Source: Epiperipatus broadwayi
Taxonomy: Eukaryota > Animalia > Onychophora
Assembly (NCBI GenBank): GCA_028023455.1
Contig: JAQFVV010000007.1
Coordinates: 12,896,001-12,960,000, forward strand
Length of the DNA: 64,000 nt
Direction of reading: 5' to 3'
This document shows, piece by piece, positions 1,057 through 61,947 of this stretch (position 1 is the first letter of the stretch; every line of letters begins with the position of its first letter). The notes under the pieces were generated by a model. The model saw only the letters and a list, made by a program, of their open reading frames with translations. It had not been told where the DNA came from and did not search any database. The position numbers and the translations under genes were made by a program.

Positions 1057-1084
1057 ACTCTAAATAAAGATGTATTAAATTTAA

Positions 1085-1383: not shown

Positions 1384-1544
1384 ATTAAAAACACATTTTA
1401 TAAACCCATCTGTGCGAACTTATAAAAAATTAAAATGTAAACTTATAATATTATAAAAATTAAAATGTAAATTTAAATTCTAAAATCAAGTTAAAATCCA
1501 AAGTAAAAGTTATTCTAAAATAATGCTAAATTTTATATATGTGT

Positions 1545-1970: not shown

Positions 1971-2069
1971 GAGAAAGTATTAATAATTTTAAATTGTATT
2001 TTGTTAAAAAGAAAGTCAAAAAGTTGCAATTAATATGTTTTTTTTGTTTGTTAATATATATTATGCTTT

Positions 2070-2232
2070 AACATGTATAGGTGCGCACAGCCACATAAGT
2101 TTATGATCGTAAATGTAGTACCTTACAATGAGTACTATTTGGGAATTTACTTCATAGTAACCCTATTTAAGCATTTCAATCAGTCATAAATAAGTTGGTG
2201 GTATTTATAATTGTGCTGCAAATATATATGTT
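2070..2232 (+). ncRNA. Hairpin module D (163 nt) between the tandem copies
   Basis: Helices 2070-2079/2223-2232, 2082-2090/2211-2220, 2091-2094/2198-2201, 2100-2107/2183-2190, with 3 G:U on the + strand. No homologue seen in copy 3. Confidence 0.5.
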
Positions 2233-2799
2233 TAAACCCATTATTTCTTAAAACATATTTACCTCAGTGCAACCTTCTTCAATAAATAATTTATAAAATT
2301 TGCTTGTCATGCCGTGTGTAAAAATAAAATGTATAAAAAAAAATAGAACGCTTGGGGGGAGGAAGCATAGACGTAAATGGTCCTTAGGAAAATGATAGTC
2401 AACATTTTTTTTTTGTATATAGTTTTTATACTAACCGAATGTTTTGTAAATTTTGTTAATCGTGTACTGTAATTACTAACCTTAAGTAATTTTTTTTTTT
2501 TGTTTATTTTTTTTAAAGCAAGTTTACTGATAGGTAATGGGCACAGACGACATTACATTGTGTTTTATTATTAAACATGAAAAAAATAAAAGTTCACAAA
2601 TAAAAATTTCTTTTTTTTTAAGAATTAAAAATTGAAAATTAAAAAATCATCTTAAACTCATATATATATAAAATCGCACAGATAAAAAAAAAAATTATTA
2701 AAATAAAACTTTATTAAAAATAGAAAAACTAAATCTTTCAACAAAAAGATTTAGAGATAAAAATATCTTTAAGTTTGGAAAACACATTAATTAATCAGA

Positions 2800-3461
2800 A
2801 ATGGAAATGATTATTTTAATTAGTCAAAGTGATCTAGCCTGTGGGCATTTAAATGTATAAGCATCGGTCAGATAGGAAAAGAATAGAAACTAATAGCAAA
2901 TGAGAGAAATCCATCGGGAAATCGGACCTCAATGGAAGGATCATCATCAACAATGACATAATGTCCATTGGATCCTAAAGGTAATATAAAAGGAAAAGTT
3001 TGGAAATTATTAGGAGTTATTACGATGTGACTATATGTGTTAGTGCGGAGTTGAAGGAGAAGGGATTGAAAAGACACACTCTTCAATCCCTTCAGTTTTG
3101 TTAAAAAAAAAAAAGAAATGACATCGTTTTCTACATTGAGGACCAGCCAAAGCAAAAGACCTCTGGATGAATAAATAAATCAGCCAACAGAATACCAATC
3201 TCTTTAGGACGGCATGGGAATTCATGTTCAAATGGCAAGCAATGGATAAAAGGAACATTTTGAAATCGTAAGAACTTTTTGAACTCTCAGCTTTAAATAT
3301 ATATAATTAATGAACATTTCTAAACAATAAGAACTTTACTTCTAAACTTGTTCCATATTTTAAAAAAAAATAGAAATAGATTCTTATCTGACCAAACTAA
3401 ATTATTTATTAATTAGGTATAATTTTATTTGATGTATTTCTTTTGTAAAATCATTTCCATT
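2800..3461 (+). ncRNA. Hairpin module U (about 660 nt, branched)
   Basis: aatggaaatgatt 2800-2812 pairs with aatcatttccatt 3449-3461; ggtcagatagga 2866-2877 with tcttatctgacc 3382-3393; cctcaatg 2927-2934 with cattgagg 3134-3141; apical gaagggattgaa 3059-3070 with ttcaatcccttc 3082-3093. Confidence 0.75.
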
Positions 3462-3541
3462 TATTTTTTTTTTTGTTCTTTTAAGTTTTTATTATGATTT
3501 CTGTTTTTCGATAAATTAAACTATATAAATATTAAACTTAA

Positions 3542-3995
3542 GTCGGGATGTGAATGGCTATATAGATTTGTAAAGTTATATTAGGGGAGGGTAATCTTAG
3601 GTTATTCGTTTCGTAGTTTGAATTTAGGTCAATGGATTGGATTTATTGGTGTAATTAGTAGATGTAGTATGAGATTCGCTATGGGCAGAATCGCTATTAT
3701 ATGCCGCACACACTCGTTTTGCCTATGGGAGGAATTATAAGATGGAGACCGCAGTTCCTTCCTATGGAGTTTTTTTTTATTGCTCTCATCATCAGATAGA
3801 TGTAATATTCCTATCTGACAAGAAGCAGTTTCTTCTCTTAACCTAATTGTGCTGCCGTATTCGTATTACATTGAACACATCGATATATCAGATGGATTGA
3901 AGTTTGGTTTGACTGCGAACCTTTGGCCTAAGGTTAAACAAGGATTGAATATTTTCTTTTCAAATGCAAATCTATGTAGTCTATTCATACTCGAC
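3542..3995 (+). ncRNA. Hairpin module A, copy 2
   Basis: Duplicate of 607-1056 with the same helices; at least one G:U in the basal stem of copy 1 is G-C here (ctattcatac). Confidence 0.8.
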
Positions 3996-4023
3996 ACTCT
4001 AAATAAAGATGCATTAAATTTAA

Positions 4024-4322
4024 GTTGGGTATAGACGCTTGCATGGGTTCGTTACCAGTTGATTATGTTTTTGGTTTTCATATTTGATCAAAATATATAG
4101 ACATTCAGTAAATACTGATACTTTACGATGAGTATCTAAGATGTATTTATGTCAGATGTCTTTTAAGTTATTGGTGTCAATGCGGTGTCTTATGATGAAC
4201 ACCATTGGGTTTCTTGTATTCCCTATGCAATTGACACTATCAATGACTTTGTATTTTGATCGTTTATGTTTATTTTGAAATGTTTTTGACCATGTAATCT
4301 ATGTAACCGATCTATACTCAAC
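4024..4322 (+). ncRNA. Hairpin module B, copy 2
   Basis: Duplicate of 1085-1383. Confidence 0.7.
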
Positions 4323-5368
4323 ATTAAAAACACATTTTATAAACCCATCTGTGCGAACTTATAAAAAATTAAAATGTAAACTTATAATATTATAAAAATT
4401 AAAATGTAAATTTAAATTCTAAAATCAAGTTAAAATCCAAAGTAAAAGTTATTCTAAAATAATGCTAAATTTTATATATGTGCGTAAATAAATGTTTGTG
4501 TGTTAATTACTGGCAGTGGCTTATTTTATTCTTTTTTTACATATTCTTAGATAAGAATTTATTATAAATATAAATCTCTTCTACTCCCTGAGCTAGTGAT
4601 AATGGGCTAACGACCGGATATTAAATTATTTTTTAAAAAAATTATTATTTTTAACTTACGTATCTGTCTACTTTATAAATTTTCTAGGTTCAAATGCCTA
4701 GTGGCACCCTGTAGTGCAGATGACATTAAGATAGACTTTCTCCGGATCATTACAATAGATTTTAAATTCTGTTTAATGCTGTAATTTTCATTTATTTTAT
4801 TTTTCTTAAGCGTCTTTTTTCTTAATGATAAAGTTTGATGTTGACACTAGATAGTATTAGTTTAAATGTTGTTGTTGTTGTTGTTGTTTTTTGCCCTTTG
4901 TAGACTCGGACATTATATCGTATCCAATGACCCTGTTCTAATTATGTGTGTAGTATGTCGAGGATGCATGGCTATATAGATTTAAGTTTTGAATTCCCTA
5001 CTTAGAAACAGGAACATTGATTTACAGGAAACTCATACCATCATCTGATTAGTTACTTTCTATGAATACCTTTAAATTAAAATAACTTTTTTTTTAATTT
5101 TTGTACATTTAGTGTCGTTTTCCTGTCTAATAAATTAAGATTTTATAATATTTTTTTACATTATTGTTCATTTATTTTAAGGCTAAGTAAAAATTTATTT
5201 TGTGTACAAATTTTTACTATCATTAAATTTCCAATACTGATGTGTAATATTATCCATTTTTCTGGATACTTATTGGAAGAGGGAGATAGGAGTCTCACAA
5301 CAAACTATTTAAAGGCTCTTTCAGCTTATACAAACAACGTTTTTTTTATTTTTTATTTGGTTTTACAG

Positions 5369-7279: not shown

Positions 7280-7639
7280 TCCATTCAGCTGTTCACTCCA
7301 TCTTATATAACCAATACACATGACCACAAACATGCATAAAGTGAAATTATCTCCAATATATGTGTTTCATGTTCAACTAGCACTCATCAATTGATCCAAA
7401 TCACCATTTCCACACATATATACAGCCAATACACATGACAACATGCATGCATAAATGAAATGATCTCCAATATACATATTTTCAGTTCATCTAGCACTCA
7501 TCAATTAGTCCAAATCACCATGTCCCACAGCAAGCTATTCACACGACCACATATATGCGTAAAATGAAATGATTTCCAATATACATATTTCATGTTCAAC
7601 TAGCACTCATCAATTGGTCCAAATCTCTATCTCCCCCCC

Positions 7640-7699
<60 letters not shown>

Positions 7700-7880
7700 C
7701 AATCAGTGCCCAGTTTATTTGAAAAGTAAATGTTCAAACTTTAATAAGCAGGCTTCGATTTTGTCCACTCTCCAACTCCACTGTTTTCCACACCATTGAT
7801 AATCTAATGATGGATTACTCAAAGCCCTTGATAATGCCAATATTGTTCCCATGCCCATGTTGACTTTTAAGTCATTGTCT
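7280..7880 (+). repeat. Interspersed repeat (family P3) with three tandem subrepeats of about 115 bp and a (TA)n tract
   Basis: Units start at about 7311, 7426 and 7535 and share tccaatat...tagcactcatcaatt..tccaaatc; homologous to the arms of 37247-37906. Confidence 0.75.
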
Positions 7881-20385: not shown

Positions 20386-21158
20386 GTAATGGATAACTTT
20401 TTCTTATTCCATTTCTGATATTAAAGTAGCCATTGCAATAATTTTAAGCCTCCAGAGTCAGTAAAACAAATGAACTCTATAGCATGCATACATGAACTAT
20501 TGATGTGCATGTTTTAGATGTTTTGTGTTTATTTAATACTCGTTACATTATATTATGTGATTTATTAAGAGTGTGTGTAGTTATATATAAAAATCATTGT
20601 TTAAGTTAATTAAGAATTTATAGTAGTAGTTCTAAATTATAATAATAAGTACTTCATTAAAATAAATTATCTTTAAGCTTAATATTTGTTGGTCAATTCG
20701 TTTACCACTAAATAAAGTAACAGTATATTATATTATCCTTTTGATTGAGCTAGTTGGGATATCTTAAATGCTGAATTAGTTTGCCATCATTCAAAGCACA
20801 TTAGTTCTTGTAATTAACTGGCACACGGGTTTACTCCAAAACAAAAAAGTACTTTGAATGATAGGTGTTGAATTCTGCAGCCAAGAAGATATCTGTATCC
20901 GGGAAACATTGTCTTAGTTATATATATAGTTTTGTATATAACTTTAGCTTGGATACAAGTACTCTTTGGATACTCTCTTCTCTGATTGTGATGGTGCAAT
21001 AATTAAATTGCATTGGTGCAGAACATATTAATAAATAAGTGTATCATATTTTTGTATAAAAGTTTTACAAAATTGTTTCACAAGTTTAGATTATATTTAA
21101 AGAGTCAAAATGCATGCTAGATGTTGTTCCTACTTCAATCTACTTACTCCATCTGGTT

Positions 21159-21217
<59 letters not shown>

Positions 21218-22713
21218 GTTGACTGTCAATAGGTGGTAGTGGAAGAATCATTATCACAAAAATTGGTGGAATTAGACAAAAATAACTTTGATATGCTTAA
21301 TTATTGATCAACATGTATCATTCTCTTTTAGGAACAACTCATAAATGTATATAATCATTCCAATTGCAAAAGACAAAAATTCAACAAAGAAAGAAAAAGA
21401 GAAGTTTAAAACCAGAACAACGAGAATGTAAATATATCACCACAATTACACAATACTCTTGTCATAATTAATTCAGAAAGAAGACATATGTCATGAAAAG
21501 AAGATGATGACTGCATCTTGAATTAATATCATGGATAAAAAAGAGTAAGATGAAAGAATATGACAACAGAATAAGAGGGAAAATATGGTGCATTAACTTT
21601 TCCAAATTTCAATGTTTTTGCATTATCCCCTAGAGGCAGTTCACTTTTATTTTGACATTTTAGTAATAAAACTTTATTCTACATTGGGAATCAGTATATT
21701 ATACTTTATTTTAAATTAATTTTATAAATGAAAAATATCATCAAAAGTCATATTTAAACTTTGTAAATATAAACAAAAAGTAATAAAGTGAAATACATAA
21801 AGAAAACAATACATTTATTAGATAATTCTGCAATGGAAGTAAAAAAAGGCAAATAAATGAAATAGTTATTAATTGAACTTCATTTCTAAACCTGAATAAA
21901 TTATTAAGGCTATAAAATTTTGTTCTAAATTTTAAATTTCCATTTATAAATATTAAAATGTCACAAAACATAATACCTTGTCAAAACATTACCAATCATA
22001 ATTTTATTTTTAGGATTACAACAAATTTCTTATTTTTGTTAAATAAACATTAAATAAAATCTAAGTCTAATCCCAAAATAATATTTATTTTTTGATAATT
22101 ACTATACAAATATTTTGTAAACTAATCATAAATATTTAAATAAAGCATAAAAAATATACAATTGCTTGGCACATTATTGAATTTCTGCATATATTTTTAT
22201 GACAAACTCCTATAATGAGGCTGTAACATTAATCCATGTTTTTAGTTAAAAGTATTCAACAATTTGAAGATAAAGATTTAAACCATGCAAATGACCATAA
22301 AGGATCACTGAAACATATGCAAAAGGGTAGAATAATAAATATACTGTAATATAAATATAGAAAAAAAGTAATTCAAAAAATAAAATATTTATAAAAACAG
22401 CACATTGATAAAATATACATTAATAAAATATTAATAGCATATTATGTAGTGTTTTTAATGATCAGAAGTATATATACCTAATATAAAGACTCTGTAATAA
22501 AGAGTAAAATATATAATTAATCTAAGAAACTATGGATACTTTCTAAGCATTAGCCCCATAATTATGCTTATCAAAAACAACAATATTACACCATTACAGT
22601 TTAAAAAACTCATTATTTATTTATTCATTTGATACTAATGAAGTGAAATTATACTTCATTTCTTAAATTGCTTTTATATTTTATTCTCCGTTATGGTAAC
22701 TTTATATTATTTA

Positions 22714-24050: not shown

Positions 24051-24117
24051 TTCTAGAGAATACATTTGATAGAAATGGTAATTTATTTATCAAAATTTTA
24101 GATGCATTTAAAATACA

Positions 24118-24222
<105 letters not shown>

Positions 24223-25094
24223 GGTTAGGATCATATTACATAAGTTTAACAAGAGATTTGTTGAATTGATTTTTCCATGTGTTAGTTAATCAATTAAATG
24301 AAGGTAAGACTCAATGATATTTAGATCAATTTAATTATTTTTGTATCTGTGCTAGAAATACATTAGTCTATTCAAAAGATGATTGGTAATAATTATTAGT
24401 ATATATGTCCAGAGTGGTGATATTAGAGTTGTGAATACAGAAGAAGTTTGACACTTATAAATTAAATTATGATTTTATATTTAAAACAAAGTGTTTAAAG
24501 AGTATAGAAACCAGTTCCTACCTTGAGTGAAATTGTTGTAATGGAGTAATATCAAGCTAACAACATGGGCATATAAATTTAGATGCTTGTTACCTCTAGT
24601 TCATCTAACTAAAATTGTTCATCACAAAAAGTAAGCATAGTGTTAGAGGATAGTCTGATTTTCAATATTAGTTGTTAAGATATATTTGGTGGTGAGATGA
24701 GGGGGGTCACTTTTGAACAAGGAAAGAAGATTTTGAAAAGAATTTCTATATTAGAAATAATAAGCTATCATTTATACTAATTGAAAAATAAGTGATATAA
24801 ATATGAATTATTTGATAACTTTAATGATTTTCACTTGATCATTCATATGTCCTTATGTTCATCTGGGCCTTATTACTTCTTGGATACATTATAGCAATAC
24901 AGAACAACCTCAAATTAATAAAGCACCTAAGTCTTTTCTTTTAGTATAATGCTTAACCCAAGTATGATATCCTTAGATAATGTTTTTGCTGAAACTTTTA
25001 TATTATTATTGTGTATCTTTTCCAGTAATTCACACCAGTCAATATGGTGTGGGTGGATCATAAATGACTTGAATAATAGCTATTGTAATAAATG

Positions 25095-26480: not shown

Positions 26481-27376
26481 TAAAATGTCATTATGGAGCC
26501 ATAACTATAAACATAAGATATTATAGAGCAGTATGCTAAGAGAGGGAAAATATATTAAAAATAGCACCAATGATTATGTATTTTTATCACTTGGTTATAG
26601 CATTGGGTTGCAATTTATTCAACCTATTCTCAAGTAACTAACTGCATTTTTTTATTATTATCAACAGGATCATAGAAAACCCTAATGCAAACTTCATATG
26701 AATTATAGTTTTATGGGGCTTAAAATAAGAAATTACTGAAAATGATTAATCCTGATCACAAAATTGGTACTTTGGTGAAAGTTGTTCTATGAGACATATG
26801 TTTTTCACAGAGGCAAAAGTAGTGCCACTCAGTGCAAGAATAGTGACCTGTCATGTTTGATGGGACAGATGTCTAAGATCATCAGTGATTGCTATTGTTG
26901 TGACTCATATAACTTATTCTTTGAAGATTTGAGGCAGTTATAAAGGGTTAAATAACATTGATAAGTGTGGTAGAAAATGAAATGAGAAAAGAATGTTCTT
27001 TTTTTATTATCTTCTGTTATTAATAATCAATTGCTCATAATTAAATCAGAGATTTATCACAATTGTTTGGTAAAATGAATAGCTTGTTATTTTTACTAAA
27101 AGAAAAGTTAACCAAGGGTCCTATAACTTCAGAAATTATATTACATCACTATTATTGAACCTATGACTATTTATTCATTTTTATTTTCATAATCAGTGTG
27201 GCAAGATTTATCCCATAGGAGAATAATTTTTCTATCACTTTATGACTTTTTATTATAACTGTAATAAGAGCACCAAATTTTTCATACAGTAGTGTCACCA
27301 AGTGCAAGCCTTCATAATCAATGGATGCAGGAATATTTATGCATAAAATCACTATCTAGTGCTTAACCATCCAATA

Positions 27377-27418
27377 TCCCCAGACTAATTTCCAGCTTAT
27401 GGCTTTTATCAGTGAGAA
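27377..27418 (-). ncRNA. Minimal type-I hammerhead motif (G8A mutated)
   Basis: Minus strand reads UUCUCA-CUGAUAA-AAGC-CAUAA-GCUG-GAAA-UUAG-UC-UGGGGA; stem I UUCUCA/UGGGGA pairs. Confidence 0.55.
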
Positions 27419-27848
27419 GCCTTAGATTTGAAAGCACTGCTTCTAGATCTTAGGATCTAATGTAACCCTCCAGAGCCACCTTTTACCTATTTTGTTAACT
27501 ATATGACTAGGAGCCCAAGATGAAAACACCATAATGTTTCCAACATTATCAACAGCATATATAAGCATATGAAATGGTGATCATGTGATGTTTTGATGGT
27601 TTTATACCTATCCTGCCCATAGGAAAATGGTAATGGTGGTTTTTAAAAAACTAAGAACCCAAAAATGTATAGATCCTGAACTGAGTTTAGATCTATATGA
27701 TTATACAAGAAAATGAGATTGTTTTTGAATCGTTTAGGTGTTTTTATTTTGGGATTCTAGATTTATAGTAAACCAAATAGGTAAAATGTGGCTGCTGATG
27801 GGTTGCATTAGATTGCAAGATCTAGGTGTAGTGCTCACAAATCCAAGG

Positions 27849-27891
27849 TTTCTTACTGATGAAAGCCACAAGCTAGAAACTAGTTTCGGAT
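27849..27891 (+). ncRNA. Minimal type-I hammerhead ribozyme motif (degenerate stem I)
   Basis: CUGAUGA (27856-27862), A-AGC-CACAA-GCU-A, GAAA, palindromic CUAG, then UU cleavage-site equivalent. Confidence 0.6.
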
Positions 27892-29747
27892 ATTGAAGGA
27901 GTAGTCACTAGATATTGATTTTATGAATACACCTTCTTGCATCCATTGATTATGAAGGCTTGCACTTGGTGGTACTACTGTATGGTGAGTTTGATACCCT
28001 TATTAACAGCATATATAATCATATAAATTGGTGATCATGTAATGTTTTGATTATTTTAATCTTAACTGTTATACTAATTATTATATTTATTAAGTAATCC
28101 TCCTAAACAAATTTAACATAATTTAAACAATAGTTTTGACAAAATTTATGCTTGCATTTCAAATTTACATCTGTACAAAAATCTTATAATTTAGTAGTAT
28201 CATAAAGAAAAGTTTAGAGATTTCATTTTGAAAATATATTAGCTAGTGGCTCTATTAATATCTTCAGTTTTATTATAATAGTTATAGATAGATTTCATAG
28301 TCATTAACGACTTATACCAGGATTTTGTTCACATTTACATACATCCACGCAACCCCCATTGTTTAGAATGAATCTAAAGGTAAGACTCCAATTGCATCTA
28401 AGATCAAATCACACTGGCTTTATTTTTGAATATGAAAAAAAAAATTGTTTGGGTCCTGATAAAAAATCTATTTTAATGGAATAATTTACTCATAAATTCT
28501 TGGTTTAACACACAGAAGGGAGAAGATGATTTGAGTTTAATCTTAGATGGCAAACCTATGTCCTGAATTTTTGATGCGTCCAATCTATTTAACAACTTTT
28601 TAGACATTTTTTATGGGGTAACTTTTCTTTTGATATCTGGTAACAGCATACTCTAAAACATATTATATTCTTATGCTTAATTTTTACTATTTTGAAATAT
28701 TTTATTTCAGTCTACAGTCATTTTTTTTCTTTACAGTTGCGATAATAAGTTAATCCCTTGGATAATTTTTCCAAAAAGAAAATAGTGATTAATTTATTAA
28801 ATTTTGGTCTTGAAACATTTTTGACTCGGTTATTGATTTTTGATTTATTTTTTTTATGTAAATTTGTAAATATGTGTATATATTTTTTTAAAAATCCAAA
28901 AATCAAAAATGTTTTTAAATTGCTATCTGATAAATTAATCTTTCTTGGAAAAATTATTTAGGATATAATTTTTTTATTTCAAGTTAATATTCAATATTTA
29001 TGAGTAAAAAGAAATGTTGACTAATAGTATTAGCTTTAGTTGACTGATAATAAAGTGTCTAAATGCAATTAAACATAGATTTATTCTACTCACAAAGAAA
29101 AGTTTATGACTAAATGATGATAATTAGTATTTTCAACACAAGACATTTATATTTGTGATTTAAAATTTTTTAATCACAGTTTATATATATATGATTAAAA
29201 CCTTTTCATAATTTATAAAACCTAAATGCATATGTACTTTATATTCATTACGCGTCTAAATTATTTTATTATGCAATTGCAGATGTGTGATACTCAAATC
29301 AACTTTTAAATCTAGACTGCTCTCTTGGTTGAACAAAATTGAGTTTTCCTTCTAAAGTTCCTTATTAATTTTTAATAAAATCTTTGTTGAGATTAGTCAG
29401 CAAACTTATAGCTTTATAATTTTTTTAATCTTTTTTACTAGCTTTTATACAATAGAATAATTTTTTATTATTTTAATTATGGCAAGCATTTTTTTATTTA
29501 ATTTAACTATCAGTATAAACTTTATATATGTATATATAGCCGCAATAAAAGTAATTCGTGCTAAATCAGGTCTTTGTTTACCTTAGTCACATTTGTGATC
29601 ATATGTATCGGTTTATGAGATAGAGCTGATAGCTGAAGAGAGCTTGACAGTCTGTGTTCGAGTCTATTATGGTTACATCTAAACTCCAAATATATAATTT
29701 ATGAATATTACCAAATTCACTACTTCCTTTATTTTGCTGTGATATCT

Positions 29748-30823: not shown

Positions 30824-31810
30824 TTACACAAGCTTTTTACATGGAAGCAAAACTCTCTATACAGTAGCACAATTCAGTGCAAACCAGAGTAATCAATGGA
30901 TGCAGGAAGGTTTGCAGTTAAAATCCTTATCTACTTCCTACTCTTCCAACATTCAAAGACTAGTTTCTCACTTGTGGTAATAATCAGTGAGGAGCCTTGG
31001 ATCTGAGAACATTGCACATAGAATTTAGTTTCCAGCAGTCATCTTTTGCCTTACTAGTTAACTATAAAGTTTTGAGTCCAAAATGAAAACAGAAATGTTT
31101 TCAATTCAAGCTCATTAGCTTGTACAGTCTTGTAGATCTGAACTCCATTCAGCATCCATACTTTTTGGTGTCTGGTTTATTAATAACCACATTCACCATA
31201 ATCCTATTGACAGGATTTGTATTTAACCACTGAACATCACATAATTACCATTCTTTATGCTTACATAAGCTGTTTACACACAGGCAAATCTCTCCATACA
31301 GAAGCACCACTTTCTCCATGCATTGATTACTCTGACTTTCACGAAGTGATGTTACTGAATGCAAAGTTTTCCTCCTGTGTAAACAGATTGTGTAAGCCTA
31401 AAGAATGGTAATCATGTGATGTTAAATAGTTTAATACCAATTCTGACCAATAGGATTATGGTTAATGTGGTTATTAAAGAACCAAAGACACTCAAAAGTA
31501 TGAATGCTGAACTGAGTTCAGATCTATATGCTTGTACAACCTAATGAGCTTGAATTAAAAACACTATTGTGTTTTCCATTTTGAATCCAAGATAAAAGAT
31601 TGTTTTTGGAGGGTTGCATTAAATCCTATGATCTAGGTCCAGTGCTTAAAGATCCAAGGCTCCTCACTGATAAAAGCTAGAAACTAGTCTGGGGATATTG
31701 GGTAAGTTGGCACTAGATAAGGATTTTATACATAAACCTTCCTGCATACATTGATTACACTGGTTTGCACTGAGTGGCACTACTATATGGAGAGTTTTGC
31801 CTCTGTGTAT
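30824..31810. mobile_element. Family P1 fold-back element of about 1 kb: two inverted 437-nt units each with terminal redundancy
   Basis: Arms are complementary along their whole length. Terminus ttacacaagct... at 30824 recurs at 31261. Hammerhead motifs at 30952-30994 (-) and 31661-31695 (+, UCCUCA...GAAA-CUAG-UC-UGGGGA, stem II deleted). Confidence 0.8.
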
Positions 31811-33221
31811 ATTTCTATCGCATAAACTAAAGACTAAAATACATTTTGTAGATAGATTATTCAATGCAATAAGAACAATTGAGCCTTTAAGATGTGAAAT
31901 AAAATATGTTCTTTCTTTAGTGAAATTTTTTATGCAAATATGATGCAAGGTTTTCAGCTCTTATTAATCGATTATAGTATTTATGTACTTTGATGCAGTA
32001 AGTGGAAAATTATGGAGCTCAAAATCTATAATTTATAGCCTGGATCCATCATTTCTAGTGATGAAACATCCTATCTAATGAAGTGTCCTATTTTTTAACT
32101 TAGTAAGAGCTGCAATATTACATTAAAATCTAGATTGCATTTTAATGTAAATAAAATGAAAGTAATATGCTGAAAACATAAACTTTTAAACAACTGTGTT
32201 AATAAAAGATTTAATAAAACAAATTTCATATAAAAGTTATAGTAATTATTATATTATTGCAATAAAAACCTATTAAGAAATGTTTTTGTAGAACTGTGAC
32301 TAATTTAATAATACATTTTTCTGAAAAATCATATAGTGTAGCTCTCATAATAATTCAACACTTGTAAATTTTTTAGAGTATCTCTAAAAATATGTTCAAT
32401 GTTTTTTATTGCTTTTTAAAATTGTCTTGACATAAGTTTAGGCAATGTAAAATTAAACTATAAAGATAACAAGTATGACACATTGTTAAAAACCAACATC
32501 TTTGAGTTAAATCTTACTTATTTTTATGATTAGGCATAGATTAAAATATTGGATTTTAAAATGGGAGTTTTTCAATCTCTTCATATTTTCTAAGCTTGTC
32601 TATTTCTTATGTTATTATTTCAATAATCATATATTATTGTTTGTATCTTTTTTTCACTTTCCAGTTTCCTATATTTCTTTTTATGAAATAATGATTTCAT
32701 AAAAAATTATTTTATAAATTCTGCATGTAAAAAATGAAAAAGAATACATGTAATTTTTATAAAAAAATAATAATTTATTATTATCATTAGTGAACACATA
32801 GAAACTAATACAATCATTCTAACTTCCAAAGCAAAAGAAAATAATTAAAAAATTAGATATAGATTTTGCAATTATTATGCTAACCAATTTTCTAGTTGAA
32901 TGCTCTTCCTCATATATAAAATGTGGATTGTGATACTGTCTTTTTATTTCTGTAATGGACATTTTCTTTTGGAGGGCTTCAATATTTTTCTTAATTGTAA
33001 GTCTTTATTATATTTTCAATCATGTCCTAGCAATATAAAAAACCCTATGAGATCTTTTTTTTTTTTTTTGGAATGGCTTTTTTTATAAGATGAATGGCCA
33101 AGTCATCATAAAACCAGAAGTAGAACATAATAAATGGTCTGAATTTATTCAGTTTTATTTCCCATGTCTTTCTTATGTTATATTTAAATAAAGTCTATCT
33201 CTACATTTTTTTATATGTCTA

Positions 33222-33293
33222 AGCATTGACTGGGAAGTGAACCCAGACAAGCTGCTTGGAAGACAACTATGCTAACCACTAGGCAACCAATGC
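33222..33293 (-). pseudogene. tRNA-Gly(TCC)-derived pseudogene or SINE head
   Basis: Reverse complement GCATTGGTTGCCTAGTGGTTAGCATAGTTGTCTTCCAAGCAGCTTGTCTGGGTTCACTTCCCAGTCAATGCT: acceptor, anticodon (TCC) and T stems pair; T-loop/B-box is mutated (TTCACTT) and CpGs have decayed. Confidence 0.8.
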
Positions 33294-36200
33294 TTGACAT
33301 GACTATCTCCAAGTTAATACAGTAAAAGGAAAAATAACAGTTTTATTGAAAACTAATAAACTGAATAGTTGTATCATTATGATAAAGATCATACTATACT
33401 ATTTGATATCTGTTGATTACTTAAGTTTATAATAGAGGGCTCTAGAGTAAAGTGAAAATAACAATACTTGGGAGATCTGTCACTTTTGTAAAAAAAAAAA
33501 TAAAAAAAAATAAAACTATGTTTAAATCCATTAAAATTGGTTTTCATTCAAGAATAACTGATTTTTTCTAACATTCTGTTTTATGCAAATGGCTGCTATT
33601 GGAAAATGCAAAAGCCAAAATAAGTAATTCCAAAAAAGCTATGGTGTAACATAAGACTTTGAAAGAGATTTAAAATGAAACCAACTTATCAAAAAAATGA
33701 AAAAAGCTATTAGAAATCCTAATTTTCAGTAATAGAACAAGTTGAGAAATAATTTGGAAGTTAAACTCCATTGAAAATGTTAAAGAAATAAAAAAAAATC
33801 CTTTGCAAAGATAGTTTAAAGAATTTCACCATAACATCTGATAATTGTAAAGCAGAACAAGTTTCTAAAGCTGCAAACCAGCCAGGAAAGACAGGAAATA
33901 GCCCAGGGAACATAATAGACACAAAAAATATTCATAGAACAATGGGTAAAAGAAATTCTATCAGTAAATCTGTCATGAGAAAAAAGTTATGATTTTGTGG
34001 TGTCGAACTGGAAGTGGCCAAATGCAGCAAAATGGTGCAGGGGAAAAATAAGAAAAAAAATATTTTGAACATTAATTCGATCTAAATTGTAGAATCAAAC
34101 AATATAGAGTATGATTTAAGCTATCTCCCTGCACAAAAATTAAACTTTTCTGATGATCCAATCAAAGTTATTGGGCTGCTTTCAGTGAAATTGGGGTGCT
34201 ACAAAAAATAAAAAATTTCCAACTCAATACAGAATTACAATGAAGTGAATCCTGAGTCAAAAAACAACGATTGAAAGATACAAATAAGTATAAATGATGT
34301 TATAGATATAAACAGAGATACTGAAGTTCAAAATTAGTTAACATTGCTTAATTCAACAATTATTTAGAATACTATAAAGATTTATTGCAAACTATTGGAT
34401 TGCATAACTGAAGCATTGATTACTGGTCAACACATTGAATTCAGTCTAGACAAGCAGAATTGAAATAATATAAATAGGAAAGAGTCATTGTTGAAATCTT
34501 ACTACAATAGGCCTACTTTAGGGTTACAGAAACCAATTGTTAAAATATGATTTTGCCATCAACTTCTGTGTTCTACAAACAATAAGAAAGAATCTTACAA
34601 AGCTAGTCCCACTTTTCATAGTTGGAATGACCTAGTGGAATCTTACAATGCTAATCATACTCTTCATAATTGGAACAATTAAGTGAAATTTTATAGGCTT
34701 GATAGTAAATCATGGAGAACTTTGTTGTTGAATGAAATAAAAAATTATATTGAACTTTGATGGACATCTGCAGTTGATAAGGCTATCAAACAAACTTAGA
34801 ACTCCTCTGGCAAATGGAAAAATGGTATTTAATTGTTTGTGCAGATAAATCTAGCTGTGATTTTGAGATTACTATGAATCAATGTATTTTATATCATGTC
34901 CTTTTGTAAATCAAGGTATTTAATTTCACGAATGCATAAGTGATCACCCGTAAAAAATGGATTTGATTCCATGTGTTTTAATGTAATAGAAATTTTTTGG
35001 TCTAGGTGGGCAGGTTATAAGGTCCTGGCCTATTTGGATTGACATGTAAAAACTTTGACATTTGTTCATGCTGCTTTTGCCTAACAGTGCATTTTGGGGC
35101 AGGTGGACTGGGTTGGTCACTGCCCATGTGAACTGTTTAATGAGAAATCATAGGTTAATGATCATTTGATTTTTCAGTCTCAGGGTGGATGACATGGACA
35201 TGAGGGGGTTATTGGTCTGTGGGGGTGGATGGTGATCATTGCTATACCTAAGGATAGGATGGCCTGGCTTGGCTTTCGATGCCTTTTTTGGTTTGATTAA
35301 TGCTCTGAATTTGCAAAACCAATGTTACACTCGGAGAAAGCAAAACTCACTTATGGGGGAAGCCCAAAGTGGATATTCCTTACCCAAGGGATGGGTCTGG
35401 GACTCAAAAGGCATGGTTATGGCTGTTCAGTCATGGATGAATTCTGGGGGGGGGTCCTTCAGTTGGGTAAAAATCATCTCTCCTGTTTGGATTTTATTTT
35501 GAATGGACCATGGCATCTTCTTGATCGACTGCCATTGAATTGATGCTTGATTGTGATATTTACTTTTTGTAGGGATACCAGAAACTATTATTTTATTATG
35601 TAAGGCAGTTGGACTAATTTGAGCTACACCCTATTGCATAATTTTAATATATCTTTCTGATATTTTTGGCTCACAGGTGTAGGTGACAGAATGTTGTTCA
35701 GCCCACATGAGCTTATAGAATAGTTAATATGTGTTTTTCATCTATGGGTTGAGTACCCATAGAATTGTTTTGTAACCTTTGACCAATAAAGGTACTTTTT
35801 GGAACAACTATTTACATTTATTTGAAATTTTGCATTACTAAGGAGGAAATAAATTCATAAAATTAAACAATTGTGTAAAAAATGGAATAATGTAAAAAAG
35901 GACCACTTCATAAAATATATTTTTTTTATTGATATTTTAAAGATAAATGCATAATATAGAAATATATTTTTTGGTTTTATATTTCTTACAGAGTTTAGAA
36001 TAAACATTACATAAAGTGTCATGACTTTTAAACAAATCATTGTTTTTCATAAAGAGTAACTGAATTCTGATAACACATGTATTGTAACTCAACTGTAAAT
36101 CTTAAAACTGATTCTATTTTATTTTCTGGTTTTCTTTTTGAAAATAAACTTTTACATTAAGTCACATAGTTATTCAAAATTCTGAATAAATATATATTTA

Positions 36201-39246: not shown

Positions 39247-40761
39247 AACCAAAGGAGCGAGTGAGAGATAGACATATCTAACATCTAACAGGGTGCCAAA
39301 TTTTAACTTTAACAGAACAGCTGCTGTACCAATTCGATGGAGTTATAGATTTACAAATAATGGATTTATAAGGGAAGCAATTTATTAGCTTCTAAAATAA
39401 TTTTAACTTGCAAAATATCTAAATTTAATTCTCGTCTTAACGTAAATGGTTTCTTAAATCAAGCCAGCCAAATTGTAACTCACAAAAGTGAATGGACTGA
39501 CTTGGCTATCATGCACTTGTAAATAACAGTCACATGAATCAAAGGCAACTTTTATTATACCTCACATAGAGTAAATAAAATACCAATCTCCTATTGCTTA
39601 TGCTTAAGGTTCTACAATTACTTTGGTAACTGATGTCATGAACACTGAGAATTATACTAACAATAAACATTATAAAAGATTACCAATAAGCTAAGAGAGG
39701 AGGAGAAACCTTGACTCACACTCATAACACTTTAATGATCTCAGTATTCCCCAAATAATCATCAACACCATAGTCAGAATTAATTTATTCCAATAATAAT
39801 ATCCATACAGTCTCTTCTTCCACCAAACTTTACTATCTTTAATGTTTCCACATTGTTGTATTTTCATGATCAGATATGCACGGAATAAAGTCTTATTAAT
39901 TTAATTAATTCATAATACCACATTAATTCTATAACAATCAATTCATGAGCTCATTTCAAAATTGGATAATAATAGTCTCAGGGTTTGAATCAGGAATGTA
40001 AAAAATTTTAGTGGAGATTTATGAATTTATTGTTGACCAATAAATGTTATCCCTGCAACATAACTTAAGTAGACATATGCTTGATCTCTGAGCTACGATC
40101 TACTTTTCATCAAGCAATAATAATAATAATAATAAAATCTTATAAATTACTAAATACCTTAACTAAAATAAAATATTCTACTAACTTAAAAATTTGAACT
40201 AAATTACTATCCTCTGGGAGTGCATACAAATACCCGCAGTGGGAAAAGGGACTTTATGTCCACTTAAGATATTAGTCACAACACAATAAATTTATGAAAA
40301 TGAAAATAATAATTAATCTAAAAGTAAATCTTCTTCCAGATGTTTGCAGTGTAATCATAATAATTTGTAATGCAAGTTATGAATGTTTCTTAAAGCAAAT
40401 TTCGGATTTCAGTAAGAAATATCAATTTAATAATCAAACTTTTTCAATGTGTCTATACCGGAATAAAACATTAAAACATTTATGTAAAATTTTCATATGA
40501 CTAAGATTTCTGGATTTCATGGGTATCAAAACATTTAGACACAACACCAAGATTTAATTAACACATAACATTTATTAACAACTCAGGTTATAAACTATAA
40601 AGTTTTAATTTACATAGCATCTTTGCAATCCGATTAATAAAACAAAATATTTACAGCAGATTTACAATCGCAACGGATAATATGATCCCTCTTTTGTGAT
40701 TACTAAGACATTTCTACATGCCATGCCTCCATAATTATTGATTTACATGGCCTTAACTAAA

Positions 40762-40849
<88 letters not shown>

Positions 40850-43800
40850 AACCAGTAATACTTTTGCTGTTTAGAAACATTTCCCTGGGAGGCAAGTCTA
40901 TAACTATTTAACACAACAGCCCTTAAATTTAGCAAATTAAAAATAACTTTTAATTAATTCTATTTCTCAATATATATATATATATATATGCATTTTGATG
41001 CTACTGACTTTACAAACCAATTATCATAAAATGTTTTATTAATTTGTAGCAGTCACATCGATCTAATTAACCACTCAGGTTTAAACTGACAACTTTTAGT
41101 TACTTCATTAAACAGTAGTTTGTCTGTTCGTTTGACACCTTTGCTTTCAAGCTTTAAACTGACTAATTATTCTAAAGGTTACACACGCGCACTTACACAT
41201 ACTTAATTGCTTTCTATGTCTCAACATAAGTAATACATCAGTAATCTTACCATTCCAGTGGTGACTTACTTTCACTAAGAGTTAGATATAATGCACACTG
41301 CTTATTTAGGCTTTCAACCATAACCTTAAATTTTGAATGATTATCAGTCTTATAAAAGTAGGTGAGCAAAGCTCATACAGGCATTATATATCAATCCTCA
41401 ATTCACACTTAAATTAAAAGTGCCCTGAAGTAGATAATACACTTCAATAGGAATTACATAATGTCCATCTATTAAATTAACAAATTCTCACACAAAATAT
41501 GACTATAAAACATATATCTCTAAGGAAAATAAAACTACAAATCACTACATATGTGATGGCAACCTGATGGCAACCCAGGAACTACTACTCTGAGGGCTAT
41601 AAGATATGTTAGGACTCAGTTTCTATACATATAAATATGGGCATGCATCAATCATTATGACTATAACCCAGAATATATCTCTTACAGGGTGTATTGCCAA
41701 TGGAGCTGGGGATGCACATTTGATCTCCTATTACATTATTAAAAGTCTTAACACTTATAATCATGAGAGAGCTATGCTCAACCCTTAAGGCAGTGTTAAA
41801 TTAGCATATCTTGTACAAACATGGTCATTCACAAACATCACTTATTTTTGAGAGAACATGGTTTGAACTCTCACTAAATATTATATTAATGTATAAAACC
41901 AACAGTCAAAGATGACTAGAATAAAATAAAAATTATCAAAGCCTTAAATAATTATGAAATAAAAAGTGTGCATCACTTTTCAACATATAACAATTATATT
42001 TAAATCTCTCATCATCCAGGACATAGTAATATCAAAATCATAAGACTATATAAGCAATAAAATAAGCATAAATAATATCAATATTTACTTGTAAGCATAA
42101 ATTATTTTTTTTTGTACAACCATGAACCTCTCATATAAACATCTTAAACTTTCACACAGACCAGTTATTCATATTACTGTAGCATTGAAATTAACACAAT
42201 GAAGAAGGCGTATTTTACCCTGCTATGAACTAAATGTGGTACCAGGTATCACTAAAATAAAATAAGCATTTACTGCATATAATAAATCAATGAATAATAA
42301 AATAACAGGTGTCTTTAAATCAGTCCATCACTTACGATCTTCCATTCACTGCAATAATTTGGCATGAACATAATCCTCTTGGCAATCACTTAAAGTTCAT
42401 CCACACATATTCTAACACACACACACATGACAGTACCTAAATATAAAATAGCCATAATTCCTTGATCTAAGATTATCAAAAATTGCACACTTGTTTGGTA
42501 GCATTCTAAATTTAGAAAGCTGATAATTTTACAAAACAGTTGCACTATTCCTTAAATATCCTTAGTAGTTTGCATATACTTTCTTGGTGAAAAATTAAAT
42601 ATAAAAAACAAAAAAAAAACAAATCACTTAATCCACCATTAATTATTAAAATTATTCATAAGTTTAATGGCACTCCAAGGAACTCAGTCATTCCCTGATA
42701 TTGGAAATTTAGCAATTTCACTTTAGATATTCAGCTCAGCAGTTATTACTATAATAATTTTTTTTATAATTTCGTTTATGATTTTCACTTATTCAGTTTC
42801 TTTTCTTTATTAAATAAGTTATTCGGGCATATTTCAAAATTTCTCTCATGCAAGAAACAGTTTTTCTTTCATGATAGAAACTGTAACTGTGGAAACATGG
42901 TCCACACTCTGAAATATTTTAACAAAAGTAAAAAATTCTAGCTAATGTTCGAATTTAAATCTTTTCCTGAGCTTTTTTAAATAAAGCAGTTTAAATATTT
43001 TGCATAACAAAATAATTCTAACAAAATAAATATTGAAAAAAGAAAATACCTGCAGTACCTTCAGGTTAACAAGCTAGGAGAGTCTGTTATAGATCCACCA
43101 TTCATTGACCCATTGCACAGGAATTTGCCATTCTTGGAATTCAATTCATGATTGTTTCAGGGAGAAAATGCATACCTGATTTTGAGATTTAAATTGACAT
43201 GCTTATAAAACTTAATATAATTTTATTTTCACTGCCAGTTTGAATAAAATATCAAGTCATAAGCTGGAAGCAAATCGAAAAATACAAAACCCACAGGAAC
43301 AAAATAATAACAGAAAAACAGAACCCAGAAGAGAACACAGAACCAACCTCCCAATAGGTGTGTGGCCCTTTTATAATCTTCGGTTGTCACTTATTTTCAA
43401 ATCCATCTCCTTGACCATTCATCCTCGGTATTGTAAAAATCATATTTGTACATTTGCACAACAAAATCCAGCATTTTAGTAGATTATACCAAGGCTGATC
43501 GAAGTGAGGTTGTTGAGACTCTGAATCCAATCTCACCTCAGCTATTTTACCAAGACTCAAAGATTTACTACCTTACGGATGACATATATGAGGCTACACC
43601 AGTATTTTTTTAATTAGTGTGCCGGCAGTAGCACATCAATGAAACATGAGACTATGATGTAAATTGGCATAATTAAAGTATAGCTATATAAGTGTGGCTC
43701 AACTAACAGACATCATTAATTTAGACTGTGATTCATAAATGTTCAAACAATAACTAATTACTAGTTAATAATTAACTAATGAATAATGAGCAAAATTTAG

Positions 43801-43897: not shown

Positions 43898-44210
43898 TTC
43901 ACTCGCAGGTGATGATGGTAGAATAAGTTATAGGCTGTTTTAACTTACATATTTAGTATTGGGTCTCACTCGCAGGCGATGATGATTTATAAAGATTCAT
44001 TTTGTTTAAATTTACAGATTTAAGATTTGATCTCACTCGCAGGTGATGATGATTTATTGAGTTACATTTTGTTTAAATTTACAGATTTAAGATTTGATCT
44101 CACTTGCAGGTGATGATGATTTATAAAGTTACATTTTGTTTAACTTACAAACATTATTTTCTCTCACTCTCAGGTGATGATGATTTATAATTTACCAAGT
44201 TACATTTTTA
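43898..44210. repeat. Minisatellite, 64-67 bp unit x5
   Basis: ctcactcgcaggtgatgatga core at 43898, 43965, 44032, 44099 and 44163. Confidence 0.92.
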
Positions 44211-47474: not shown

Positions 47475-47587
<113 letters not shown>

Positions 47588-52497: not shown

Positions 52498-52664
52498 GGT
52501 GCAGTGCTCTCAGATCCAAAGCTCCTCACTGATGAAAACCACAAGCTAGATACTGGATGAGTAGACACTAGTTAGGGATTTTATGCACCAATCTTTTTGC
52601 ATCCAGTGATTATTCTGGTTTGCACCCTGTGGCACAACTGTATAAAGACATTTGCCTCTGTGTA
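52498..52664 (+). repeat. Family P1 fragment (single arm)
   Basis: gatccaaagctcctcactgatgaaaaccacaagctaga...ctggtttgcac...tttgcctctgtgta matches 31640-31810. Confidence 0.8.
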
Positions 52665-53779
52665 ATTATCATTTTGCTTGATCTAATCTTCTATAAAACC
52701 TCATGATGAAGCATGTCAAGTTATAATGCCCAAATTGTAAATCTTTGCCATATAATAGATGTTTCCTATTAATTACTAGATGTTAGATATAACAAATTCG
52801 CAAAAATGAAATTAATCGTATTTCAAATATTCATAATAATAATGGAATTCTGAGTTAAGAAAACAACGATATAAATGGCAATACTTGGGAGATGTTATCA
52901 ATTTTTTATTGAAAATTATATCATATGATGTAATACTTATTTTAATTAAACTTAAATGGTAAGCTGTCACTTATTTAAGTATATTTTCATAATATCAAAT
53001 GTTTTTTTTTTTTAAAAAAAATTATATCTTCAGAATATTCTTTTTATTTTTCTAACTTTTAGAAAACTATCTTTGAATGTTTTATTTACGAAAAAATATA
53101 GATTAACATAATATATTATTAATATTATTAAAAATCAAATAAATGATGAAACTCTTGTTTATAAACATTACATTTTTAACCAAAACTATTTATGGAATAA
53201 TCGAGTCTGAAAACATTATTACAATAATCCACAAGCCACAAAGAATTACTAAGTTACATTTATATATAATGTCCACCTTATTTTATATCAATGCCAATCT
53301 GTTTATCAGATAAAAAAAGATCACTTCTATTTGAATAAGACATTGTCATTGATATGAAATAGGCGGGTATTATCGGCAAGTATATTTAAATAATTTGCTG
53401 TGGGATTGAACTTGAGACTTATTTAATAACATTTCCAAACTTGATTGATTCATGAATATATTATTATAAGTAAAAAAAAATATTGTGAGTTTGTTGAAAG
53501 TCATTACAATTTTTAATAAAGTATATATCAGTGATCAAAATACACCTGGGTCTCATATTATGCTGATTTTTTAAATGCGATTTTGAAGTTATGCGATTCT
53601 TGTTTCCTCTTAATATCTTTGTATGCATTTTTCTTTTATGTCATAAAAATTATTAGATCAGAAAACAACTCCAATAATGTGTTATTAATTTAAATATTAT
53701 ACATTTTGTGCACTCACACATCATATTTAAAATAATAGTGCATTATCAGAGTTTGACTTTCATCTAATAATTTCAATAT

Positions 53780-55870
53780 TTTCAGTGCTTTATAATAGTA
53801 CTGTCATAGATTTCATGCAATAAAGAAGTTCATAATTCACTTAAAATCAGGATTTCCCCATTTTATATTGTACCAATCGGAATGTAAGTGATGATTGAAT
53901 CTAACCGCAAAAACAATATCTGCACTACAAGAGCGCCATCTAGGCATTTGAGCCTAGAAAAATTTAGAGTAGGCAGATACGCGCTGTTAAGATTCCACTT
54001 TATTTAAATATTCTGATCATTAGCCCAAGTCACTAGCTCAGCGGAGACGCAGAGATAAAAATCTATAAATTTTATATCTTAAATATCAAAGAGTAAAAGC
54101 CACTGCCAGAAATTAACATATAAAAATATTTATTTACGCACATATAAAATAATATTTAAATTTTGAGGAATAAGTTTAACATTTTAGATTTTTATATTAA
54201 CTTTTAATTTTACATTTAACTAATTTCAATGAGTTTAATTATTATTTAGATAGTCAAGTATGAATAGACTACATAGATCTGCATTTGAAAAGAAAATATT
54301 CTTCCCTGATTTAACCTTAGGCAACAAATTTCGCAATCAACTGGTGCCAATCCATCTGATACATTCATGTATTCAATGTAGCATGATACGACAACACAAA
54401 ATACTATATTGTCAGGAATGTACATCTGAACAATAAGTAGAAATAGAGAAGAGATTGACTCTCCACCAACAGGAATGTGACATCTGTTGGCAAGTAGATC
54501 AATAAACAAAAAACTCCATAGGAATGGACTGCGGTCTTCTGCCAACTTACAAACCCATCCATAGGCAAACAGAGGGTGTGTGGCATATATCTATAATCCT
54601 GCCCGTAGCGGACCTCATACTACATCTACTAATTACACAAATATATCCAATCCATTGAACCAATTCAACTACAAAATGAATAACCTAAGATTACCCTCCC
54701 TTAATATAACTTTACAAACTATATAGCCATTCACGCCCGACTTAATTTTAATATTTAAATACGTTCGCACAGATTTGTTTAAAAATGTTGGGTATAGATC
54801 GATTACATAGATTCCACAGTCAAAAACATTTCAAAATAAACATAAACGATCAAAATACAAAATTATTGATACCGACAATCGCAGAGGGAAACTTATAAGT
54901 AACCCAATAGTATTCACCATAAGCTACTTGCGTTGTCACCAATAACTTAAAAGACATCCGAATAAATACATTTTAGATACTCACCGTAAGGTATCATTAT
55001 TTATCGAATGTTTATATATTTTGATCAAATATGAAAACCAAAATATAATTAACCGCAAACGAATCCATGCAAGCGTCTATAAACAACTTAAATTTCATAC
55101 ATTTAACCAATCTTTACAATAAGAAAAAAAAAATTTGAAATGATGTTTATCAATCGGAAAACATATAAAATTAAACATTATTAATTTGATTTAAAGACTT
55201 ACAAAAGTCAGATAAGAGTCCGTTTTAACATTTCAGTTGGCTTGTTTATCAATTTGTAAAACTTGACGAAAGTTCTTGATTGATTTTAACAATTGTTCAT
55301 TTCAGATAGCTTATGGTAGAAGAGTCCAGGTTTCTGCTTTTATTAATTCCCGCGATGCCTCTGTTGGAAGGGAATGTTCTGGAGATGGCAATAGCTGGTT
55401 CAAAGTATCACAGTCTTTTCATTTTTTTTTTTTAATAGAGAGTGTGGTATGTGCATCATACCTCATCTCTCAAACACAAACGCTGGAACTGTCCGAAAAA
55501 AACTGTATATCCCTTTTTATATTATCCACCAGGATTCAATGAACAAAACGTCACTAGTCTATCACTTTCGTTAGGGTCCGAGCCAAGGCTTAGTGCTTCC
55601 ATTGGTCAAACTAAAATTTCTTTCTTCTCTTATCTAACTTTTCATCTGACTTTTTAATTACACAGCTTTTAGATAATTAATAAACAATCATTTCCATTTA
55701 CAGATTACAGGAATTAATTAATACCTGTTTTTACTTTAACTTACGTTATTTTTTTATTAAAATATTTTTATATTTCAATCTGGTATTTTTTATTAAAAAA
55801 AATACGTTCAGATACTTTTTTTTTTTGTTTCTGAAAAAAATATTTTTAAAGTTTAGCATCTGTGCGAATG
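53780..55870 (-). ncRNA. Copy 3 (diverged paralogue, inverted) of the multi-hairpin locus, module order U-B-A-C
   Basis: Reverse complement aligns blockwise to copy 2: U 55698-55137, B 55087-54787, A 54741-54253, C about 54150-53780, plus upstream tcgcacagat near 55860. Stems are retained with G:U pairs on the - strand. Confidence 0.7.
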
Positions 55871-56033
55871 TATATACGTATAACAAACATTTTTAATTTT
55901 AGCGTTTAGTTTTTTACTCTTATTTGCGAACTTTTAAGTTTTTATTTTAAATTAATGTAACGACATATTTATGTATCGTTACAATATATACACATTAAAT
56001 TTTACAAGATTATAATGTAAATCTATTCAAATG

Positions 56034-56927
56034 TTATAGATGCCTATAGTATGCATGCTGTTGTTTTTGCATTTTAAAACACATTCTATTTTTGCTTTTT
56101 AAAAAAAGAGTACATATTCAATTAATTATTTAGTGTCTGTAATTTTATTTTTAAATAGTGAATAACAGTGGTGGGCACAATTAAATTTGCCTATTAAAAA
56201 TTAAAATCTGATTTTTAATTGTAATTAACAATTTAAAAATTACATAATGTGATGTGAAACAATGAAATTTCATTTTTAAACAAATTAAAAATTAAAAAAT
56301 TAAAGACAAAAATACAAATTTAATTTTTAATTGTTAGTTTTAATTAAATTTTACCCAACAGCAGTGAGTATGTGTCTTTTTATTATCATAAGTCTAAGTT
56401 CTTATTTTTATTTTAAACTTTTAGTTTACCCTAATGGAGAAGAAAAAACACCCAAGAAAAGGAATTTCTTTGGAAACAAAAATTTCAATTTTAGATTGCT
56501 TAGTGACAGGGGAATGATCAACAGCAATTGGAAAACATTTTAGTTTGGGTGAGTCCACTATAAGAGCAATTAAAAAAATAAAGTTGGTGCTAGTTGTATT
56601 TCCTCTTGTGATGAATCTGATGTCTTACTAGTTCACAAACAAACCTGCATATATTTAAATAGCAATAATGATTAAAATACTGTACATGTATGAAAAAATG
56701 TAAAATACTGTAAATTACACATAAAAATATACTGTTTTGAATAAAATTATATCCTATAGTTAATGAAAAAAGTTTGTCTTGTATCAATTTTTTTTCAAAT
56801 TTGAAATTTTTTATTAGTCATATTTTATTTTCTTATTTTTTTTTAATGCGAATTTTAAAGTAATTTTACTTTGTTTTTCTGCTTTTCTGAGGAACCTATC
56901 TACTGCATAAAATGAGACCCAAGTGTA
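56034..56927 (+). mobile_element. Tigger/pogo internal-deletion derivative (5' boundary uncertain)
   Basis: 56434-56583 encodes MEKKKHPRKGISLETKISILDCLVTGE*STAIGKHFSLGESTIRAIKKIK, a CENP-B-type N-terminal HTH; 3' end ctactgcataaaatgagacccaagtg-TA resembles a CpG-decayed Tigger TIR. Confidence 0.75.
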
Positions 56928-61401: not shown

Positions 61402-61947
61402 TTACATTGATATCGGCCTTTCAAGTCAAATTGTGCAAACGCTTTTATGAGTGTTAAATAATAAATGAATACCCTCTGACCAAACAAGATATAGAATTTA
61501 TGCAGGAATAAAAGGAATCCTCTTATTCCTATGACTCAAATATTTATATATGAGCAAATCTGAAGTACTGGCACAGAAGGTGTGACTATAGAACAGTCAC
61601 TTTAAATTACTATATATAACGTATGAATGAATGACGCTGATGAAATTTACTAGAATTTACTGAACGTCATTCCAACTGAAACTTAATCATATATATAAAT
61701 CAGCATTTATTTTTATAGTGTTGGAATGACGTTCAGTAAATTCTAGTAAATTTCATCGGCATCATTCATTCATACGTTATATATAGTAATTTAAAGTGAC
61801 TGTTCTATAGTCACATCTTCTGTGCCAGTACTTCAGATTTGCTCATATATAAATATTTGAGTATCTTGTTTGGTCAGAGGGTATTCATTTATTATTTAAC
61901 ACTCGCAAAAGCGTTTGCACAATTTGGTTTGAAAGGCCAATATGAAT

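Follow-up and report, generated by a model that had tools for sequence, protein, structure and literature searches.

Two sense-strand hairpin modules lie in swapped order in copies of a high-copy, LTR-like mobile element

The 64-kb stretch of DNA analysed here (hereafter the window) holds three copies of a unit made of four blocks, U, A, B and C, in which the two hairpin-forming blocks A and B occur in opposite orders. By blastn and alignments within the window, copies 1 and 2, on the plus strand, read U-A-B-C, and copy 3, on the minus strand, reads U-B-A-C. The A/B swap between copies is confirmed. It is borne not by a family of host genes but by an LTR-like mobile element of very high copy number, and as transposon structural variation it is of an ordinary kind. 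Our preferred reading, to which we assign a probability of about 0.7, is that the three copies belong to one abundant non-coding LTR-like element whose A-B array has been re-phased, likeliest by duplication and loss.

When copy 1 was used as a blastn query against the window, four minus-strand blocks were recovered near 54-55 kb, and their order was not colinear with the query. When copy 2 was compared, with greater sensitivity, to copy 3 in reverse complement, U matched in two blocks (2550-2991 with 55974-55515 and 3309-3473 with 55301-55121), and A (3522-4031), B (4009-4375) and C (4384-4721) of copy 2 found their counterparts on the minus strand of copy 3 at 54761-54217, 55102-54745 and 54245-53918, respectively. 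All four blocks have the same orientation in copy 3 as in copies 1 and 2. Their identity to copies 1 and 2 is highest in B (~86%), followed by A (75-83%), C (71-73%) and U (60-65%). Alignments place the swap breakpoints in AT-rich linkers and show that short flanks travel with each module, the same flanks being found in both orders; the B-to-A linker of copy 3 consists of the start of the copy-1 linker between B and C joined to the end of the copy-1 linker between U and A. A preliminary description of this DNA had claimed an opposite module order, U and C flanks unchanged in place and orientation, and breakpoints within AT-rich linkers. The blastn blocks bear out the first of these claims, blastn and alignments together the second, and the alignments the third. 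Colinearity between a plus-strand copy and the reverse complement of copy 3, which that description had named as the result that would speak against a swap, was absent from the blastn comparison, where the blocks stood in swapped order.

The B-to-A junction is also present in data assembled from short reads. All sampled 31-mers across a 65-nt stretch spanning the copy-3 junction were found in short-read contigs of sample S1, which may be the source of the assembly and is not an independent individual. The share of junction 31-mers was 1.00 in runs X2 and X3 and 0.75 in runs X1 and X12, and the exact junction words were found in runs of S1 only. Because the junction 31-mers are present in short-read contigs, we treat an assembler misjoin as ruled out. 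The possibility of an assembly artefact had been raised at the outset as a danger to the claimed swap; the S1 short-read contigs carry the exact B-to-A junction.

Folding predictions single out A and B as the only strongly structured parts of the element (sense-strand z -6.4 to -7.5), with unremarkable folding in U, C and the internal part that separates copies 1 and 2. The predicted energy of A is -140.7 kcal/mol in the sense strand versus -75.7 in the antisense strand of copy 1, and -163.7 kcal/mol (z -7.5) versus -85.3 (z 0.0) in copy 3. For B, the corresponding values are -93.5 versus -65.3 kcal/mol in copy 1 and -93.1 (z -7.3) versus -53.1 (z -3.6) in copy 3. In antisense, the fold of A is thus no more stable than that of shuffled sequences and that of B falls far below its sense counterpart; the consensus fold of A contains 25-31 G:U pairs versus 1-2 A:C mismatches. 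As a control, a DNA palindrome at 61534-61862 gave -236.3 versus -233.0 kcal/mol on its two strands. Since this palindrome folds equally well on both strands, the strand asymmetry is a property of the A and B modules, and the gap between sense and antisense energies speaks against A and B being MITEs or DNA-level palindromes. Pair-keeping changes between copy 1 and copy 3 were double-sided in 8 cases in A and 4 in B and one-sided in 21 and 9, with 11 and 5 changes that break pairs, a count that draws on three sequences only, two of which are near-identical.

The predicted hairpins are indifferent to their order. Minimum-free-energy folds of 900-nt stretches over both modules contained no A-B pairs in any of the three copies; all pairs were A-A or B-B, apart from some that involve the linkers. 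In these models, A and B fold autonomously whichever comes first. The notion that the hairpins behave as cassettes, already put forward in the preliminary description, holds up in that the modules keep their boundaries in either order and fold independently of it, and the hairpin coordinates proposed there agree with the minimum-free-energy stems of A and B and of their copy-3 counterparts. None of A, B, U and C had an Rfam family at the gathering threshold or at E up to 5, and the relaxed scans, which covered 1-5000 and 53500-56300, gave no hammerhead match. The motif CUGAUGAG in the A apex of copy 1, a conceivable hammerhead core, was rejected as a chance occurrence, being absent from copies 2 and 3 and lacking Rfam support.

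A separate observation concerns substitutions in contigs of the family relative to the sense strand of copy 3. A-to-G changes exceed T-to-C changes by 30 versus 18 in a DNA run, and the same excess is seen in one RNA-labelled run (49 versus 24). This bias fits G:U-rich stems and could reflect either selection that favours wobble pairing or RNA editing that has become fixed.

Copy 3 is a complete element of 2115 bp, located at 53869-55983 on the minus strand and delimited by empty-site joints and by its ends. Read on that strand, it starts with TGTAACG and ends with GGTACA, giving TG...CA termini, and a 4-bp ATAT target-site duplication lies on either side of it, the upstream copy at 55984-55987 and the downstream copy at 53865-53868, as the joints and the sequence both indicate. 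Its U part (55105-55983), which has no special structure and is ~60-65% identical to that of copy 2, is followed by the B cassette (54760-55104), which by alignment and fold comprises a linker, the hairpin at 55087-54787 and a trailer ending in GCGAACGTAT. Next come the A cassette (54248-54759), delimited in the same way and made of a linker and the hairpin at 54742-54252, and the C part (53869-54247), which blastn and folding identify as again free of special structure.

Contigs of one DNA run (X1) and of three further runs were mapped to 53700-56100 with a likeness limit of 80%. From X1, 39,542 DNA contigs fell on the copy-3 region, and the repeat is therefore a very high-copy one. Empty-site joints that lead directly from 53864 to 55984 were carried by 14 contigs of X1, 3 of X6 and 2 of X7; they skip 2119 nt, and 4-5 letters at the joint fit both sides. 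The sequences that flank copy 3 (53700-53864 and 55984-56100) are also very high-copy, with a contig depth that sums to the order of 10^5, and uninterrupted versions of them occur elsewhere in the genome. As these flanks are themselves repeated, copy 3 is a nested insertion in another repeat. Judged by its sequence, copy 3 is probably a solo LTR.

Copies 1 and 2 are arranged differently, as a direct pair. Copy 1 (1-1810, plus strand; A hairpin at 607-1056, B at ~1080-1389) is cut by the window start and is probably a 5' LTR. It is followed by a non-coding, unstructured internal part of 717 nt (1811-2527; fold z 0.07) and by copy 2 (2528-4754, 2227 bp; A at ~3542-3995, B at ~4024-4322), probably the 3' LTR. 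By blastn, copy 2 (2939-4752) is 95.4% identical to copy 1 over 1808 nt, with a period of 2938 nt. Copy 2 starts with TGATAGG and ends with ATTACA, and copy 1 ends with GTTATA, the C of the terminal CA being changed. The two copies are most likely the LTRs of one non-autonomous insertion, an identity that we infer from ends, target duplication and pairing, with the 5' end of copy 1 lying outside the window; given this truncation, the pair could also be part of a longer tandem array. If copies 1 and 2 are indeed LTRs of a single insertion, their A-B order counts once and not twice.

Other hallmarks of LTR elements were sought around this pair. No TGG-type primer-binding site (PBS) was found within a few nucleotides of 1811, nor any match there to the only tRNA of the window, a tRNA-Gly, and the only candidate resembling a polypurine tract (PPT) was a short AAAGCAAG, 5 nt before 2528. 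There is no ORF of at least 110 aa in or near the element, and no reverse transcriptase in the window. An LTR element with no such ORF would be non-autonomous. The sequence around the elements is AT-rich (the window has ~27% G+C) and non-coding.

Two fragments near copies 1 and 2 resemble the hairpin modules. Within the internal part, 2070-2143 gives a weak nhmmer match (E 0.36) to the apical part of module B that includes the common motif TACCTTAC..TGAGTA. At 4947-4985, 200 nt past copy 2, a ~35-nt fragment resembles the 5' basal arm of A (GTCGAGGATGCATGGCTATATAGATTT; nhmmer E 0.17) and may be a remnant of another copy.

Among known systems, the closest comparison is with solo LTRs and with non-autonomous LTR retrotransposons that have large non-coding LTRs, of the LARD/TRIM type. 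Like these, the present element has TG..CA ends, a 4-bp duplication, a near-identical direct pair, a short non-coding internal part and a very high copy number. It differs from them in that no PBS or PPT was recognised, in that the LTR (2.1-2.2 kb) is three times as long as the internal part (0.7 kb), and in the two long sense-strand RNA hairpins within the LTR. A literature search found no description of such hairpin-bearing LTRs.

To place the swap in the wider family, we turned to contig joints. Immediately upstream of B, at 55104, the consensus of 19 loose-ended contigs corresponds to the 3' terminus of A with its linker (17/19), and at least four go-back joints, from 55104/5 to 54253/7, run between the A end and the B start through different short linkers. 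Because both the loose-end consensus and the go-back joints link the end of A to the start of B, the A-B order is common in the family. The B-A order was seen in copy 3 only, among the best-supported joints listed. A further loose end, at 55106 in X6, might have marked another U-to-B junction; since its best match did not distinguish the 3' arm of A from U, it was set aside. Conserved patterns of A and B gave no match in collections of genome contigs and viral contigs, and six metagenome loci retrieved with a conserved 21-mer of A were dismissed as chance, the likeness being confined to the 21-mer with no extended homology around it.

A and B themselves are related at their bases. Over the linker end and 5' base, the two modules share 33/55 ungapped identities, and over the 3' base 34/55, scores that were reached by 12 and 8, respectively, of 200,000 random 55-mers from the window. 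The nhmmer profiles of A and B also return reciprocal weak matches, each on the 3' arm of the other, in all three copies. The interiors are unrelated at the blastn level. From these similarities, we judge the basal stems and the adjoining linker ends of A and B to be homologous; with bases homologous and interiors unrelated, A and B together form an old, diverged two-unit tandem array within the LTR.

Such an array offers a route to the swap. Each of its two units consists of a short AT-rich linker and a 300-500-nt stem formed only in sense RNA. Re-phasing from A-B to B-A may have taken place in the lineage of copy 3, or the reverse change in the lineage of copies 1 and 2. Duplication would first give a three- or four-unit array, from which the outer units would then be lost, by unequal recombination or by reverse-transcriptase template switching at the bases and linkers that the units have in common. 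As the folds are independent of order, both arrangements could persist. The homology of the A and B bases and linker ends makes duplication plus loss, or recombination, plausible, and to that extent the proposal of duplication and loss or linker recombination in the preliminary description stands. No A-B-A or B-A-B intermediate was seen, and in relic tests beside the junctions 301-1833 of 3000 random segments scored as well, so that these tests lack significance. A B stub upstream of A in copy 1 and a B trailer after A in copy 3, though suggestive by eye in alignments, were rejected as relics for the same reason, as 10-60% of random AT-rich segments score as well.

There are precedents for the steps of this route. 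Direct repeats in retroelements are a well-documented site of template switching by reverse transcriptase, and repeat modules in retroviral and retrotransposon LTRs, such as the U3 enhancer repeats, vary by duplication and deletion through this process. As in those LTRs, units here are gained, lost or re-phased between lineages, with short border homologies as mediators; unlike U3 repeats, the units are RNA hairpins of 350-500 nt and differ in order, not in number. Circular permutation by duplication and truncation has been described for proteins and tandem arrays. The change from A-B to B-A with unchanged outer flanks resembles it, as if an A-B-A-B array had been trimmed at both ends, with the difference that no intermediate of that scheme was observed here.

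We weighed several other explanations of the swap against re-phasing in the element lineage. The B-A order could have arisen once, at the copy-3 locus and after insertion, by template switching in replication or by unequal sister exchange. The restriction of B-A to copy 3 among the best-supported joints listed is what such a local event would produce, and so is the confinement of exact junction words to S1 runs; exact 31-mers are private to one copy anyway, however, and the S1 result does not discriminate between the two options. To swap two cassettes cleanly at a single-copy locus would moreover require several steps, whereas transposon lineages are copied often and in an error-prone manner, and we consider a local rearrangement unlikely.

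Alternatively, A or B might itself be a small mobile unit, whether SINE-like, MITE-like or a rod resembling a retrozyme that lacks its ribozyme, which was inserted at different linkers. The identical cassette boundaries in both contexts would suit this, as would the summed DNA depth over A and B, which is 3-5 times that of U. The depth excess is more simply explained by the conservation of A and B (80-86%) relative to U (60-65%), which lets more contigs pass the 80% limit. No target duplication lies beside either cassette in either position, nhmmer finds no solitary A or B in the rest of the 64 kb, and there is no hammerhead or other Rfam match. Retrozymes are non-autonomous LTR elements with hammerhead ribozymes and rod-like circular RNAs; the present element shares with them a non-coding LTR-type organisation and strongly structured, G:U-rich sense RNA, and departs from them in that no hammerhead was detected in any copy. 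Insertion of mobile cassettes is, in our estimation, improbable.

A broader version of modularity would treat the hairpins as RNA cassettes, independent of position, that move as units within the LTR and also between element lineages or families, either through recombination or through a mobility of their own. This would be a distinctly long shot; if true, the difference between A-B and B-A would be what remains visible of a system by which retroelements exchange long structured RNA modules.

The preliminary description had called the copies paralogues and likened the change of order to the shuffling of hairpins in a polycistronic precursor, and a host family of long hairpin RNAs (hpRNA, endo-siRNA or polycistronic miRNA-like), shuffled between paralogous loci, would indeed have strand-specific, G:U-rich hairpins in a row, as polycistronic miRNA clusters and hpRNA loci do along one putative transcript. 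RNA-labelled runs also contain contigs over A and B, but contigs of such runs are no proof of transcription. The copy number is very high, the ends are TG..CA, and copy 3 has a 4-bp target duplication and contigs of the empty site, which mark a mobile element; its stems, of 300-500 nt and with no Rfam match, are not miRNA-sized. We therefore consider the gene-family interpretation highly improbable. Least credible is that the copy-3 order is an artefact of misjoining among near-identical repeats: a high-copy family is easily misassembled, but the sampled 31-mers across the junction are all present in short-read contigs and copy 3 is 14-40% different from copies 1 and 2 throughout, so that it is no chimaera of them and a misjoin is very unlikely, and copy 3 has intact ends and a target duplication.

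With the element recognised as mobile, the candidate "shuffled hairpin gene family" drops out of the possible new host RNA systems, and the more interesting object becomes the hairpin-bearing LTR-like element itself. Its two sense-only hairpins have survived both a sequence divergence of 15-25% and an exchange of their positions, which suggests that they may be autonomous cis-acting RNA modules of the element. In this respect, the swap can be read as a natural experiment: the function of the hairpins in element RNA, whatever its nature, would be independent of which of them comes first.

The window contains several other features. The palindrome used as a folding control, at 61534-61862, is a near-perfect inverted repeat with 143-nt arms that are 98% complementary, a 43-nt spacer and 1-2 G:U pairs; we regard it as a DNA-level palindrome of recent origin, for example a MITE or foldback element. 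Rfam at the gathering threshold reports no hammerhead in the window, and a tRNA-Gly(TCC) gene at 33221-33294 on the minus strand is the sole Rfam or ARAGORN match in the 64 kb. A dispersed repeat family is represented at 27262-28005, 30838-31809 and 52549-52664 by pieces of ~120-140 nt in direct and inverted orientation, and a 67-nt unit occurs at 43899-44146 in three tandem copies that are 79-82% identical. Long simple-sequence tracts with an 8-10-nt period lie at 7582-7745, 21096-21271, 24052-24277, 40698-40851 and 47484-47585; they show mutual similarity on both strands.
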